This document shows, piece after piece, positions 31,185-53,362 of a DNA stretch of 64,000 nt. The notes under the pieces were generated by a model. That model was not told where the DNA came from, ran no database searches, and was given only the letters and a program-made list of their open reading frames with translations. The translations under genes and the position numbers were made by a program. This stretch comes from Phaeosaccion multiseriatum (taxonomy: Eukaryota; Protista; Ochrophyta, other classes): NCBI GenBank assembly GCA_965112735.1, contig OZ218960.1, positions 2,046,001-2,110,000 of the forward strand, in the 5' to 3' direction. The stretch's first letter is position 1. Every line of letters starts with the position of its first letter.

Positions 31185-32815
31185 ATGCTGTCCCCCTCTG
31201 CTTTTTACGCCCTATGCTTTGCACTAGGCCCTATGTACCTGCTTGGCGGCGTGTTGGCCACGAGGAAGCTCGTTCGCATCCTTGATGCCACTGCAAACTA
31301 CAATGCGAAAAGGTATACGTCTCCTTCTCGCAAAAACAACTCAAGAGGCTTCCATCTTCGGTCACCACTCTCCTTCTCTTCTCTCCTTCTTTGTCTTGCT
31401 TTCCTTTCTTAAGCCCAAAGCTTCAGCTCTCAGGACTCGTCGGGGGGCCTTCCTCCATCAGCGGCGGCACAGTGGCCTCGTTTGCGCGCTCTCTGCGCTC
31501 TGGAGGGCCCTTGACCACACAAACGGTTGTGTACATACTTATCTCCTGCACCTTCTTGCTCCGCGTCGCGTGGGTGGTGGTGGCCGCGTTTGCGTATGAC
31601 GCTGAGCTCGGCGAAGTCAGCGCAGGAACAGGTTTGTCCCAGTGCCCAGAAGACCCCCTCCTTTTGTTTCTCACGTCCCACGCTCCTGCCACCGTGCCAC
31701 CGCCTCCTTCCTCCCGAAAGGCCTCCGCCTGGCCTTCTACTTCCTGGACATGGGTCCACAGGTGCTGTATCTCACCACGCACGTGTGCCTGGCCATGTTT
31801 TGGGCACACACGTTCTACACGGCAGCAGGCGATGTATTTGCCTTCCAAAATGTGGGTACTTTGTACTACTACCGCGGCTTGGGAGCTTCAAGTTCTGAGC
31901 AACTTATCTCGTGGGGGGGGGGGGGCAAAGATACACAAGGGGTCAGGACGGGAGGGCAATCCCTTCGAGGCTTGCTGTCCGTGCTTCATCTATTGGTCGA
32001 CTGACTCCTCGTCGCGCACGTCCTTATCTTGCTCCTTGGCACTGACCTTCCAGGGCGTCTTGCCGCTGTGCCGCCTTGGAATCAGCCTGCACTGGGCAGC
32101 CGCCGTCATTATCGGGGTCTTATACGGGTCGCTTTGGAGCAGCTTCTCCTACTACGTCAGCCCGGCCTGGGCAGCTCTCACATCCTCCTCTTACTTGCTC
32201 GTTGCCGCCGTGCTGGCGGGGTTCGCCCACAAGTCAACAAAGGTGGGGGAGGAGGGAGGGGTGGTCTTGCTGAAAGGAGGGCCAGGGCTCTTCTCAGACG
32301 TGGACCTTTGGGCTGAAAGGGCTGTACTGGCATGTACTGTTACTGGCATGCCCACCAATTTCTCACGCGCACGCACACACGCACATCCTCCCTGTCTACT
32401 TGCCCTCCTCCAGGAGCTTCAGCTGGTGCCTATCGACCTCCCCATGCGCACCAAAAAGGTGACCGACGTAACCGGCATTACCGTCATCCTGTGCACTGTG
32501 TGCATGGCGAGGGCGGCTCTTGTACCTTTCATGATTCACAAACGCATTCCGGTGGACACCGCAGCGACCGCTCTAGAGGCCTTTCTGTACTTCTTCTGCT
32601 TGGAGACGCTCCCGCAGCTCCTTGTCATTGCGTACAATCGAAAGCTCCCTTTCGCGCCGTCGCGCTTCCACAGCACAGCAATGGGCGGCGGCGAGGATAT
32701 GAGTTTTTGGGGCGGGGGTGCCGCAGCAGCACCGGCAACAGCTCAGGGCGATTTGCAGCTGGAGCCTACAGAGACGGACCCCCTCACCGCTGGAGGGCGA
32801 AGGAGGGCTGGTTAG
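31185..32815 (+). CDS. TOM1/THH1-like (DUF1084) 7-TM protein
   Basis: FLDMGPQVLYLTT..LAMFWA, PIDLPMRTKKVTDV..ITVILC.VCMARA, YFFCLETLPQLLVIAYNRKLP. Confidence 0.8.
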
Positions 32816-48155: not shown

Positions 48156-49692
48156 TCATTCCCCCTTTTCTGCTTTCTCTGCGGCTCTCCTTCGGTCTCG
48201 GGCGACGCACGCTCGAATGTAGCTGGAGCTAAGACTGGCGGCCTCTGTCCGCCTCGTCACCACAATCTGGAGCGGCGCCATGCCCTTCTCAAGGCGGATG
48301 CTGTTAATCTTTTCGGCCCCCTTGGTGGTTTCACTGCTCACAACGATGGCCTGGAAGCCTGCCTCTTGCACGGGAGGGCCAAGGGGGTCTTGGATCTCCT
48401 CCACGCGCAGATTCAGACTGGGCTTCATCACTTCGAGGAAGGAAGTCACCAGGGCTATGCGCTCGTCTACGGGGCTGATGAGCTCCTTCAGACTCTTCTT
48501 ACTCAGCATGGCGTCGTTCGTCACCTGTGTTTCGGAGCGAAGCAAGGGCGCAACCGTTATAACAACGCCCCTCCTCGCCCCTGGTTATCTTACTCGGACG
48601 TACATAGATGAATGACCAACACACAATTCGTACTCACCCCAACTGTGAGTGTGTCAGTGCATATGCTGGCTGCGAGCGTGAGCAGCTTCTTGTGGCCATT
48701 GTGCATATGGTCAAATGTGCCCCCACATGCAACCCGCTCGAAGCGCGGCAGCACAGCTCCAGGGTGCGGGTCCTCTAGGTAGACGTAGTTGTTGCTCCAA
48801 GCCTCTTGGGACACGGACCAGAGACTGGTGAGCGCCAAGTCGGCCAGGCCTGCCTCCGAGCGGCGGGCATTGGCGAAGTGCAGAAGCTGCTGCCCGTCCG
48901 CAGGGGGTTCGTCCGTCAGAAGAAGCTGAGAAGGAGGAGGAGAGCGCAAGTAAACACAGTGGAGATGGGGTTGGGCGGGAGTGTATTAGCATCTCCCCCA
49001 GAGTCATCTGGACAAAGTAATCAGCAGTGATGAGGTACCTGCACGTCGTGCTGCATGAGAGCAACGCTCCAGTCAGCCATGTCCTCTCCGCCGCCCTCCT
49101 CGGGCAGCAGCACCTGCACATCCACCAGCTCCCTCTCCACCACGCACGCCGCATCCCACAGGCGGCTGTACAGCTCTGCCACGTACTCCCTCACGCGCCC
49201 ACTGGGTTGGTCCTCGGCCCCCTTCAGCACCACGAGGAGTTTCGCAGTGACCGCTACGGCGAGTTAGACGTACAAGCAGCAGCAGCAGCACATAGAAGAA
49301 GAAGACGGAGAAGAAGATAAGGAGGCTGGGGAAGGGGAATCCCAAAGCAGTCCAGGATGTGAAGGAGCAGGGTGCATCTACTGTAGGACGACTGGCTCAC
49401 CCTGGAGAGCGTGGAGCATGCAGGCATCGTTCCGAAGCGCTTGCTCAAAGCCGCCAGCGGATAAAGGAGGCATGCGCAAGTGCAAGATTCCTCCCACGGC
49501 CTGTCCTCCATGTGCTCCTGCGTCTTTACCAACCGCTTTGATGTTCCCTTTCCTGGTGCGTCCCTTTTTGGCAGTTGCAAGCGGCGAGTGCACGAAGGCC
49601 GATGATCGCGTCAGTCTCTTTACCAGCAGGGCGAGACCCAGGAGGGGAATTATCCACCGCACCGCGTTCCCACCGCTTCCAGATCGCGTCAT
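48156..49692 (-). CDS. Phosphopantetheine adenylyltransferase (PPAT, eukaryotic CoaD/COASY-type), 4 exons
   Basis: VACGGTFDHMHNGHKKLL (HxGH), VGVTNDAML, IQDPLGP, AIVVSSET..GA..IN..R, SLSSSYIR. No dephospho-CoA kinase domain follows. Confidence 0.92.
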
Positions 49693-50001
49693 TTGTCTTT
49701 TTACTTCTTGCTTTCGGCCGCAGGCGCCTCAGGCTTCTGCTTATCGAGGCAAGAGAGAGGGACGTTTAGGGGGCGAACATCCTAAATTGTGAACTGATTA
49801 CTTTTACCAACCCCGCGAGCCGACTTGTTACCGAACCGAAAATACAACACACGCGCACAGCACCAACAAGAAAGGAACATTCTCAAGGGAGAGCACTCCT
49901 TGGGAGAGTGTGGAGAAGTGGCGGGGTAGTGGAGGGGTAGGGAGGATAGAATTTCTAGAGCGGCGGCGAGCTCTGTCTGGTGCCGCGTGGCGATTACCAA
50001 C

Positions 50002-53000
50002 ATGGTTCTCTTTCGTCTCTGCGTCGTCTTGTTGCTGGTACTTGTGTCGCGCGTGGCGGGTGCATTCGGCCCCTCGTCCAAAGTCAAGGATGTGGACGAC
50101 AAGAGTTTCTCAAAGAGTGTGCTCAAGAACGAGGGTGAGAAAGTCGTCAATGTTTCTTCCTCTCTTCTCTCTCTTGAAAAGGCTTGTCGGCAACTTGCTT
50201 GTGCTTGTCCGGAACCTTCTGCTTGGCATTGAAGACCTTTGCGAAGCGAATCAGGTGACCTCACAGCTCCCCCTCCGTTGCTCTCCACCACCTTCACTTT
50301 CTGGCTGTGGCCTTTGCTGCTAACGTGGGCGTGACCGGTGCTGCTGCCCAGGGTAAGTGGCCTCCTCTTCTGCTTCTTTGTCTTGTTCTTCCTCGCTGAG
50401 CTTGCTGTAGTTTCTTTCCAAATCCTTCTCCCTGTAGCGCTCTTGCCCCTGCGTCTTCAATGTCGGTCCACGCTGACTTGCTCTTTCGCTTCCCTTGTCC
50501 TCCCCCCCCACCCTGCCGCTCGTCAAGTATTGTGATTGTGGAGTTCTACGCTCCGGTAAGATAAGAGCGCCTCACAGTGGAGGCTTTGGGGGGGGGGGGG
50601 GAGCAGCATGCGGAAGCCACGATTCCCAACTATGGCCCCTTATCGTAACCTTGTTGAAAGTAGCTCATTGGGCCCCTTCCTCTTGTGTGTGTCTGTCTCC
50701 CTCACCCACGTCGCGGATATCTCGTACCTGGCCTCCGATCAATACCTACAACTGACAGTGGTGTGGTAAGTTCTCAAAAGCGCCGATGGTGGCTGCCGCG
50801 GATCCTCTGTCCTTTGAGCCTCCCTCCCTAAATGCCTTCTTTCCTCTGCGCCTGTTCAGGCCATTGCAAGAGCCTGGCTCCTGAGATGGAAAAGGCTGCC
50901 GCTCTGCTTCAGGGGGTCGTTACTGTTGCCGCCGTGGACGCAACGCAATCGGAGGCTCTGGCCCAAAAGTATCAAATCCAGGGCTTCCCCACCATCAAGG
51001 TGTGCTGGCCGTTCGTTGTCTCGGCGTGTCTTGGGAGTGTCTTGGAGTGAGCGTAAGTCGTGATGAGCTTGAGAGAGGAGTAGTATCACTGAGTGCTCCG
51101 TGTCGTGGCGTGCTTTGCGCAATGACTGCAGGTATTCGGGGCGGACAAGAAGGCCCCTGTGGACTACCAGGGGCAGCGGACGGCCGATGCCATTGTCACC
51201 GAGGGGATGAAAGCCGTACGGAGGCTGGTGTCCGACAGGCAGAGCGGGAAGGCCAAGAAAGAGAAGGGGTAAGGGGTAGGAACCCACTGGAGGCAGTCTC
51301 GGCGGTGCTCTCCATTGGCGAAGCCTGTTCGTTCTGACCGTGTCCAATCTCCCTCTCTCGTGTCCCCCTCCCTCCCCTTACTCAGAAGTAGTGGTAGCAG
51401 GCGCCCAAGCCCGGCTCCTCGCGGTGGGGGCAAGAAGCGCGACGTGGTGACTGTAACGGCGGACAACTTTGACACAGAGGTGCTCGGCTCTGACGAGGCG
51501 GTGTTTGTCGAGTTCTACGCTCCGGTAAGATAACAAGAGCGCCTCTCAGTGGAGGCTTGCATACGGGAAGCACAACTCCCCAACTCCCCAACAGTCGCCC
51601 CTACTTAGAAGCTCGTTGAAAGTTTCTCATTCGACCCCATGTTACTGTGTGTGTGTCCGTCCTATCCCTCCCACGTCGCGGGTGTCTTGTGCCTGCCCTC
51701 CGACCAATGCCTGCAACTGACTCAGTGGTGTGGTAAGTGGTCAATGGTGCCGATGGTGACTGCGGCTGATTCTCCATGCTTAATGTATCCTTATAATCCG
51801 TTGCTATCAGCTTCCCTAAAAGCTCTCTTTGCTCTTCGCTTGTTCAGGCCACTGCAAAAGTCTTGAGCCCGAGTGGGCTCAGGCAGCTACCGAGCTCAAG
51901 GTGAGAAAAGGACAGCCATCCTGGCCATCGTGTGCCCGCAATGACGAAAGCAAAAGCATGAGAATGTGATCTCTCACGTTTCCCCTCCAACCTCTGCTCT
52001 GTTGTCAGGACTCCGGGGTGAAGCTTTGCGCTGTAGATGCTACTCAACACGAGAACTTGGCTCGGCGCTACGGCGTGTCTGGCTACCCCACCATCAAGGT
52101 GTTCCCACCAGGCCCCAAGAGTGCAGAGCCCACCCCTTACAACGGACCAAGAGTAAGTTCTTTGCTCTGCACTGGGGCTGTGTGAGGCTGACATCCGCCT
52201 CAAGTCGTGTGCTGGCTGACCCCGCTGCGCCCCCTTTCTCCTCTCCGCATCGCACAGGACTCAAGTGGAATCGTGGCCTTTGCCCTGAATCTCATGGAGA
52301 CGAGTGACTGGGAGCCCGGCGTACCGGAGCTCACAGAGACGCAGCAGCTATCCCAAAAGTGCCAGGGTAACAAGATTTGCGTCATCGCCGCCCTGCCACA
52401 CATTCTCGACAGCGGCAAGGAGGGGCGAGAGGACTATATTGCCACCCTGGTGTCAGCAGCCAAGAAGGTAGGTTTCTTGTGAGGGCAAGGGTCAAGATCT
52501 AGGGGAACCGCCGCTATATCCGGTCTCTAGTCTAAGTCTCGACCGACCGTTCCGCGCCCTCTCCGGACGCAGGCCAAGGCCGCCCACTTTCTGCTCATGT
52601 GGACGGAGGGAGGCGTGCAGGGCGAGTTCGAGGAGGCCATGGGGCTCACGTTTGGATACCCCGCGGTGGTGGCCTACTCCAAGGAGAAGGGGGCCCGGGC
52701 GGTGCACGTGGGCAGCTTCAACACAGAGGCCGTCGGGAACTTCCTCAAGGGGTAAGGGAGTAAGGGTGCTTTCCGTCCTGTGCTGCCTCCTGCCTCCTCA
52801 TCCAATTGTGCTCGTGACTTACCCGACTTTCTTTGCCTGTATCCACCATCCACCCCCGTGCCAGGCTCATGACCGGGAGCACCAAGACCATTCCCTTGGC
52901 GACCGTGCCCAGGATTCTCTCAGTCACACCCTGGGACGGAGAGGCGCCTGTCCTGGAGGAGGAGGAGGAGCCGTTCTCTCTAGAGGACTTTTTGAACGAA

Positions 53001-53009
53001 GATCTTTAG
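50002..53009 (+). CDS. PDIA6: Protein disulfide isomerase A6 (P5/ERp5) with a 1-nt exon (50352) and two 7-nt exons (50759-50765, 51726-51732)
   Basis: Signal peptide; two Trx domains EFYAP|WCG|HCK, GFPTIKVF and YPTIKVFP; b domain ICVIAALPHILDSG; acidic tail ending NEDL. Confidence 0.93.
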
Positions 53010-53362
53010 GCCCTCCCGCTTCTGCGCTTCTGCCTTAGGGGAGGGGTTGAGCTCGAACCTTCGTTTGGCTCCTGACAAGGTTCTGAGGCGACCCAGCCCA
53101 GAACCTGGAACCTGGCCCGCTGGCGAGGCTTGGCAGAACAGCCTTGGCCCTCATCACTGCCTTATTACATGGCTTTCCCCCAGAACCTGGAACCTTGGTC
53201 GCCTCAGAACCTTGTCATGGGCCGAATCAGGCCGGTTGCGCCGGCCGTAATCAGTGATCGGCCGTCAGAAGCAGAAGAACAAAAAAAAGAAAAAAAAAAA
53301 AAAATTGAAATTGAAACTGGCTCCTTCCCACGCCCTTCATCTTCATCTGTTTTCGTCTCGCC

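Follow-up and report, generated by a model that had tools for sequence, protein, structure and literature searches.

Can a reading frame be carried across an intron gap by an exon of a single nucleotide? The question is raised by a locus of the ochrophyte alga Phaeosaccion multiseriatum, situated in a stretch of 64,000 nucleotides (nt) of contig OZ218960.1 (positions 2,046,001 to 2,110,000 of the forward strand, assembly GCA_965112735.1), referred to here at its full length as the window. The locus holds a gene for a protein disulfide isomerase of the PDIA6/P5 type. In verified genomic DNA, the two exons flanking the first gap of this gene were exactly one base out of phase, with phase 1 at 50134 and phase 2 at 50528. 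Splicing 50134 straight to 50528 gave N-E-V-L-stop, i.e. a stop after two codons. Within the gap, an AG at 50350-50351 was followed by one G at 50352 and a donor at 50353-50358, reading CCCAG/G/GTAAGT (slashes mark splice junctions). With G 50352 spliced in, the sequence became ...KNEGIVIVEFYAP, in which the codons GAG G-G-T ATT encode ...NEGIV. Judged from the genomic sequence, G 50352 would very likely be a constitutive one-base exon between two complete, adjacent GT-AG introns. An earlier note had proposed an exon of this kind from the letters of the window, and its coordinates, phases, motifs and the immediate stop all held. The gene and the parts of the junction are as follows.

50002 to 53009, plus strand: PDIA6/P5-type protein disulfide isomerase gene, assigned by gene model, Pfam and identity to full-length homologues.
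50002 to 50134, plus strand: exon 1, which encodes a putative signal peptide and opens the first thioredoxin domain; its end, AAC GAG G, is in phase 1, and it was aligned to the N-termini of homologues up to ...VLKxx.
50135 to 50351, plus strand: upstream intron of 217 nt, GTGAGA...CCCAG, with a weak pyrimidine tract before the AG (donor 9.1 bits, pyrimidine fraction of the acceptor 0.59).
50320 to 50324, plus strand: CTAAC branch-site candidate of the upstream intron (within GCTAAC at 50319-50324), with its A at 50323, 28 nt before the last intron base.
50352, plus strand: G, proposed as a one-base exon that fills the second position of a Gly codon G-G-T, based on family spacing and a conserved Gly.
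50353 to 50527, plus strand: downstream intron of 175 nt, GTAAGT...TCAAG, with a strong pyrimidine tract and a CTGAC branch-site candidate whose A lies at 50476, 51 nt before the end.
50528 to 50555, plus strand: 28-nt exon consisting of T and the codons ATT GTG ATT GTG GAG TTC TAC GCT CCG (IVIVEFYAP), which needs phase 2.

The coding model comprised 13 exons at 50002-53009 on the plus strand and, from the ATG at 50002 and with G 50352 included, formed an open frame of 440 codons. Its translation showed a hydrophobic N-terminus (putative signal peptide), two thioredoxin domains with WCGHC sites, a third domain of the PDIA6 C-terminal type and a C-terminal NEDL. The exon translations of both catalytic domains were matched by PF00085 (Pfam Thioredoxin). 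A weak match of exon 11 to PF24541 (Thioredox_PDIA6_C) had an E-value of 0.0012, which was below the curated cut-off for the 70-residue piece alone. Homologues were collected by a library-wide HMMER search with exon 11 and by a profile search. The full-length ones were 47-56% identical, carried PF00085 together with PF24541, and several were named PDIA6 by their source, the Joint Genome Institute. The nearest came from the brown algae Ectocarpus, Pylaiella and Undaria, the raphidophyte Fibrocapsa, Chrysoparadoxa and Tribonema, which places the alga among ochrophytes with an affinity to brown algae. No protein with more than 56% identity was present in the protein collections searched, and no record of the 417-codon open reading frame of the window was found in the contig collection. 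The combination of two thioredoxin domains with a PDIA6-type C-terminal domain, which is the architecture of PDIA6/P5, was found in the model. The NEDL, a candidate signal for retrieval to the endoplasmic reticulum (ER), was visible in the translation only, and homologues had EL-type tails. By its sequence features, the gene is the PDIA6/P5 orthologue of an ochrophyte alga.

The number and the identity of the missing base were given by the protein family. Across two alignments with 26 homologues, the segment from a conserved Phe via VLK to VEFYAPWCGHC contained no gap. The aligned pattern was KSF...VLKxxG....VEFYAP, and 10 of the 11 closest homologues had Gly at the junction. The second domain of the same gene (DNFDTEVLGSDEAVFVEFYAP) likewise aligned position for position with KSFSKSVLKNEGIVIVEFYAP, without a gap. 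Since the homologues were gap-free and the Gly at the junction was conserved, exactly one base was lacking and the junction codon had to be G-G-T. The restored codon and its spacing agreed with the homologues, including those of Ectocarpus and Tribonema, whose genes are intronless at this place. The need for one extra base, on which the earlier note had insisted, was thereby confirmed by the open model and the alignments, and a G fitted the conserved Gly.

A base lost from the assembly would have the same effect on the frame, and the DNA was therefore compared with independently built short-read contigs from four DNA runs of one sample, with word depths of 45-535x. The contigs of the four runs were identical to the window over 49500-50601, the sole difference being the length of an intronic poly-G. 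The same contigs showed indels elsewhere, at 50587, 51360 and 49724, so a difference at the junction would have been visible. According to this agreement, the GGG at 50133-50135, the AG/G/GT and the acceptor at 50527 are real DNA of the sample. An assembly error in the GGG run was rejected, as was the scenario of a longer G run at 50133-50135 in the reads, which had been named beforehand as a possible refutation.

Two of the deviating positions were of interest in themselves. The poly-G at 50588-50601 comprised 14 G in the window and 15-16 G in the contigs of three runs, and the contigs of the fourth run broke there. Its length is uncertain or variable and the reading frame is unaffected. In each of the four runs, roughly half the contig depth at 51360 showed an intronic C run lengthened by one C, which is probably an allelic indel. 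Its presence means that the contigs retain such variants.

A true frameshift could take the form of a one-base deletion in a former GGGG, making the gene a pseudogene or a strain-specific null, or of an error shared by assembly and reads. One-base exons are a priori rarer than frameshifts, the junction is part of a short G run, and the four DNA runs represent one sample, possibly that of the assembly. Against this stands the identity of the short-read contigs to the window at the junction, in spite of the indels that they reported elsewhere. The other 12 exons were intact, in frame and conserved, and the deletion would have had to hit an exon boundary exactly and to coincide with an internal AG/G/GTAAGT. 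Such a frameshift is considered very unlikely.

Canonical splicing by other sites was enumerated. The frame was kept open by 41 single GT-AG or GC-AG introns between 50040 and 50550, none of which kept both the length and the VEFYAP strand. These introns dropped conserved residues, added 9 to 69 low-complexity residues or placed their acceptor within the IVIVEFYAP exon. Just one single intron gave the same length (50151/50543); it changed IVIVE to EKVVN and had poor sites. Internal exons of 1+3n nt that restored the frame numbered 44, and 50352 was the only one that added no residues while providing a GT donor and Gly. The other one-base candidate, a C at 50438, was followed by the 'donor' GCTCTT, which is without consensus, and would have yielded Ala. 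The remaining internal exons brought extra residues or a GC 'donor' lacking consensus. An alternative donor/acceptor pair that restores the frame without 50352, for which the earlier note had left room, was thus not present in acceptable form among the introns and internal exons enumerated.

The frame might also be restored by some further route, such as another combination of exons, an alternative first exon, ribosomal frameshifting or the insertion of a base at the RNA level, although nothing specific to the locus speaks for any of these. Every canonical alternative adds 1-42 low-complexity residues or replaces the conserved strand, in a segment without gaps in all homologues. A start at the in-frame ATG at 50460 would cost the protein its putative signal peptide as well as the conserved VxxxDDxxFxxxVLK. 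The region contained no structured RNA or Rfam family; a structured RNA or small nucleolar RNA as the explanation of the long gap was rejected at a fold z-score of +1.06 with no Rfam match. Routes of this sort carry hardly any probability.

The quality of the proposed splice sites was compared with that of the remaining introns of the gene. The donor GTAAGT at 50353 scored 11.8 bits, equal to the best confirmed donors of the gene. Branch-like motifs in the other introns were located 38-48 nt from the intron end. The two halves measured 217 and 175 nt, compared with 94-203 nt in the ten other introns, whereas a single intron of 393 nt would have nearly double the length of the longest of them. 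All other introns of the gene were GT-AG. With both strands of the 64-kb window counted, the motif YAG-N-GTRAGT had two occurrences where 1.67 were expected, i.e. there was no general enrichment, and about 0.005 occurrences are expected per 393 nt. Among 200,000 Markov sequences of 380 nt each, modelled on the interiors of the introns of this gene, 0.25% contained YAG-N-GTRAGT, 0.05% contained it with N=G and 0.005% had in addition a CTRAY 10-45 nt upstream. The looser AGNGTRAG was found in 2% of the Markov sequences. It is fair to put the likelihood ratio in favour of a functional site at no less than 50 and up to several hundred.

The leading explanation other than a one-base exon is a single intron of 392 nt with the borders GT...AA (50135-50526) or TG...AG (50136-50527), in which the internal AG/G/GTAAGT would be coincidental. 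It would yield the identical messenger RNA (mRNA), GAG GGT ATT. Because the bases at 50135 and 50527 are also G, the mRNA sequence cannot separate a one-base exon from one intron with non-canonical ends. Finding AACGAGGGTATTGTG in complementary DNA (cDNA) would accordingly not be decisive, as a GT-AA or TG-AG intron leads to the same product. A cDNA reading GAGGGTATT (GAG GGT ATT) would mean that the frame is restored, but the origin of the G at 50352 would not thereby be shown. From the splice-site motifs alone we infer that it comes from this position. The single intron is further favoured by the weak pyrimidine tract of the acceptor at 50351, and the strong branch site and tract before 50527 would suit one long intron equally well. 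However, it would use a dinucleotide that no other intron of the gene uses, it would be almost double the length of the longest other intron, and it would require a coincidence of about 0.25% or rarer for the internal consensus site. A single non-canonical intron is thus regarded as unlikely.

Several other points weigh against a one-base exon at 50352, in addition to the shared G on the outer borders. In the acceptor before G 50352, the pyrimidine-poor tract included six G in positions -20 to -4 and the score was -3.5 bits. The position weight matrix behind this score was built from only 10 introns and is overfitted, so the low value is reported and not leaned on. The acceptors of two 7-nt exons of the same gene, described below, were equally pyrimidine-poor (0.53). 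The downstream acceptor was AAG, compared with CAG in the other 11 acceptors. The motif was picked out by a reader seeking it, which makes the chance figures partly post hoc. A run search placed the locus in the four DNA runs only and in 0 RNA runs. Finally, the intron pair was absent in all three related genomes compared. In Ectocarpus sp. 6, the entire segment ...VLKSDGVWLVEFYAPWCG was within one exon. In Tribonema minus, exon 1 continued through ...VEFFAPW. In Chrysoparadoxa australica, an intron followed the next codon (GGG GTG/GTAGGT), 4-5 nt beyond the junction of the window. Given its absence in these three relatives, the intron pair is specific to this lineage. The homologues P0126 and P0120 were on contigs without introns, and exact and degenerate DNA patterns gave no match in the metagenome contigs.

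If G 50352 is an exon, the introns 50135-50351 and 50353-50527 would be removed consecutively, in the manner of intron definition. U1 pairs with the donor positions -3 to +6. U1 bound at the second donor would consequently cover the AG of the first acceptor, and the two sites could not be occupied together, which implies sequential removal. The downstream intron, with its consensus donor and strong tract, would probably be excised first. Its excision would place real exon sequence behind the weak upstream acceptor. A parallel for downstream-first removal is the 9-nt exon of potato invertase (cited in PMC4674806). Skipping of the base, i.e. joining of 50134 to 50528, would result in a premature stop and no enzyme. 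The earlier note had concluded that skipping would switch the gene off; this holds only insofar as a premature stop would arise, and no sign of regulated skipping was seen, so that regulation by skipping is unsupported.

Very short exons were also present at both active sites of the gene.

50759 to 50765, plus strand: 7-nt exon TGGTGTG of the first WCGHC site, encoding W and C and contributing base 1 of the G codon.
51726 to 51732, plus strand: 7-nt exon TGGTGTG of the second WCGHC site, with flanking introns homologous to those of the first 7-nt exon.

As both WCGHC sites need 7-nt exons, exons of very small size already have to be handled in the splicing of the PDIA6 gene. The window and Ectocarpus sp. 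6 had the phase-1 intron after WCG in common (window 50759-50860, L001 4420-4530 of Ectocarpus sp. 6), whereas the intron before W was not shared. In Chrysoparadoxa, an intron was located inside the W codon (TG/G), and in Tribonema directly after W. With only the intron after WCG in common with Ectocarpus, the 7-nt exons probably arose by a second intron gained 7 nt from an older one. The one-base exon, too, may plausibly have arisen by intron gain beside an older intron. An introner-like or repeated-intron origin was rejected: the half-introns matched neither each other nor the rest of the window beyond CT-rich low complexity, and their depth was single-copy.

The introns around the two 7-nt exons (50556-50859 and 51525-51847) were homologous between the domains, with 71% identity over 210 nt in one pair and 79-83% in two blocks of the other. 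The exons preceding these homologous introns ended in nearly identical codons. This homology points to gene conversion or to duplication of an exon-intron block, long after the divergence of the domains. Among the homologues, the protein P0003 of Chrysoparadoxa australica (L002 2001-4125) had about 50 inserted residues relative to all others and diverged from them at its C-terminus, probably because splice sites were missed in the annotation.

Repeated elements were found on both sides of the gene. Just 3' of the stop codon, 53064-53226 held an element resembling a miniature inverted-repeat transposable element, with terminal inverted repeats of 33 nt (88% complementary) that were 97 nt apart. 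Its read-contig depth reached up to about 400x the single-copy level in all four runs. Upstream of the gene, in the promoter region, 49634-49767 had about 8-9x single-copy depth and is a moderately repeated element, most copies of which carried an extra C after 49724. Elsewhere in the window, the minus strand showed a candidate 2-nt exon at 32788-32789, CCAG/CG/GTGAGG, with an upstream pyrimidine tract of 0.82 and a CTAAC 22 nt before the AG.

If real, the one-base exon would extend this exon type to a third eukaryotic lineage, the photosynthetic stramenopiles, after land plants and fungi. It would lie in the gene of a housekeeping enzyme of the ER, and without the base no intact protein could be made. 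A one-base exon is beyond what gene finders can model, and they would annotate the PDIA6 gene as broken or truncated. A lesson for method is that a single base equal to the bases at the outer intron borders cannot be proven to be an exon by cDNA alone. Together with the two 7-nt exons, the one-base exon would suggest that the spliceosome of this alga uses intron definition with almost no lower limit to exon size. The ordered splicing of abutting introns would thereby become directly testable. It is conceivable, and put forward tentatively, that G 50352 belongs to a class of obligatory 1-7-nt exons spread over the genome, which would originate from introns gained beside others, or a few bases away from them, at AG/G/GT-like sites and whose splicing would follow a set order under strict intron definition. 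In that case, the alga would be the first stramenopile with single-base exons and among the richest organisms known in this respect, and standard annotations of its relatives would systematically break conserved genes.

Several known systems resemble the junction in part. Ratchet points of recursive splicing are zero-length exons of the form AG/GTAAGT, from which no base is kept, and are located in very long introns. The PDIA6 junction is similar in that a 3' and a 5' splice site adjoin and removal would be stepwise. It differs in the one retained base, in the sequence AG/GGTAAG, which has no GT donor directly at the AG, and in a total length of 393 nt. The AG was followed by GGTAAG, with the GT one base later, which places the junction outside the class of zero-length ratchet points. 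The description of the step as 'recursive-splicing-like' in the earlier note suits the stepwise removal and does not extend to membership of that class, as one base is kept. Stwintrons are spliceosomal twin introns of fungi: the inner intron splits a splice signal of its outer partner, and no sequence between the two is retained. Both arrangements have two introns in one gap and consecutive excision, but the PDIA6 introns would be complete, side by side and separated by a kept base.

In the literature searched, no paper was found that deals with very short exons of stramenopiles, brown algae included. In plants and fungi, 1-nt exons are known but rare. One-base exons have been proven in Arabidopsis APC11 (A333; Guo and Liu 2015, PMC4674806, where recursive splicing is also discussed) and likewise for APC11 and VPS55 of plants (Yu et al. 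2022, PMC8831610). As in PDIA6, a constitutive single base lies between GT-AG introns, is essential for the frame and was missed by annotation, and the authors propose stepwise removal by intron definition. The plant exons were shown by base substitution as well as cDNA, reverse-transcription PCR and RNA sequencing, and they are conserved across land plants. The base in APC11 is an A, whereas the G of PDIA6 has G on the outer borders as well, which leaves room for non-canonical intron boundaries.

In the fungus Coprinopsis cinerea, annotated exons of at most 3 nt comprise 13 of 1 nt, 57 of 2 nt and 27 of 3 nt (PMC12230235). Its genes are intron-dense with short introns, very short exons are regular and gene models break if they are omitted, which is comparable to the PDIA6 gene with its two 7-nt exons. 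The Coprinopsis set was derived from long-read RNA and the PDIA6 case from DNA only. In the CYP621A P450 genes of Fusarium, a conserved Gly codon receives its middle base from an AG/G/GT one-base exon (Nelson and Syed 2026, PMC12940212). Kingdom and gene family differ, and 20-24 orthologues share the Fusarium exon, which SRA reads confirm, compared with genomic DNA alone for PDIA6. The two cases agree in the AG/G/GT, the middle base of Gly, phase 1 upstream and phase 2 downstream. In both, the enclosing 'intron' is unusually long, and an intronless or gap-free homologue served as the length marker by which the base was recognised. The one-base exon of PDIA6 would thus very probably be of a kind known from plants and fungi, in a lineage that is new for it.

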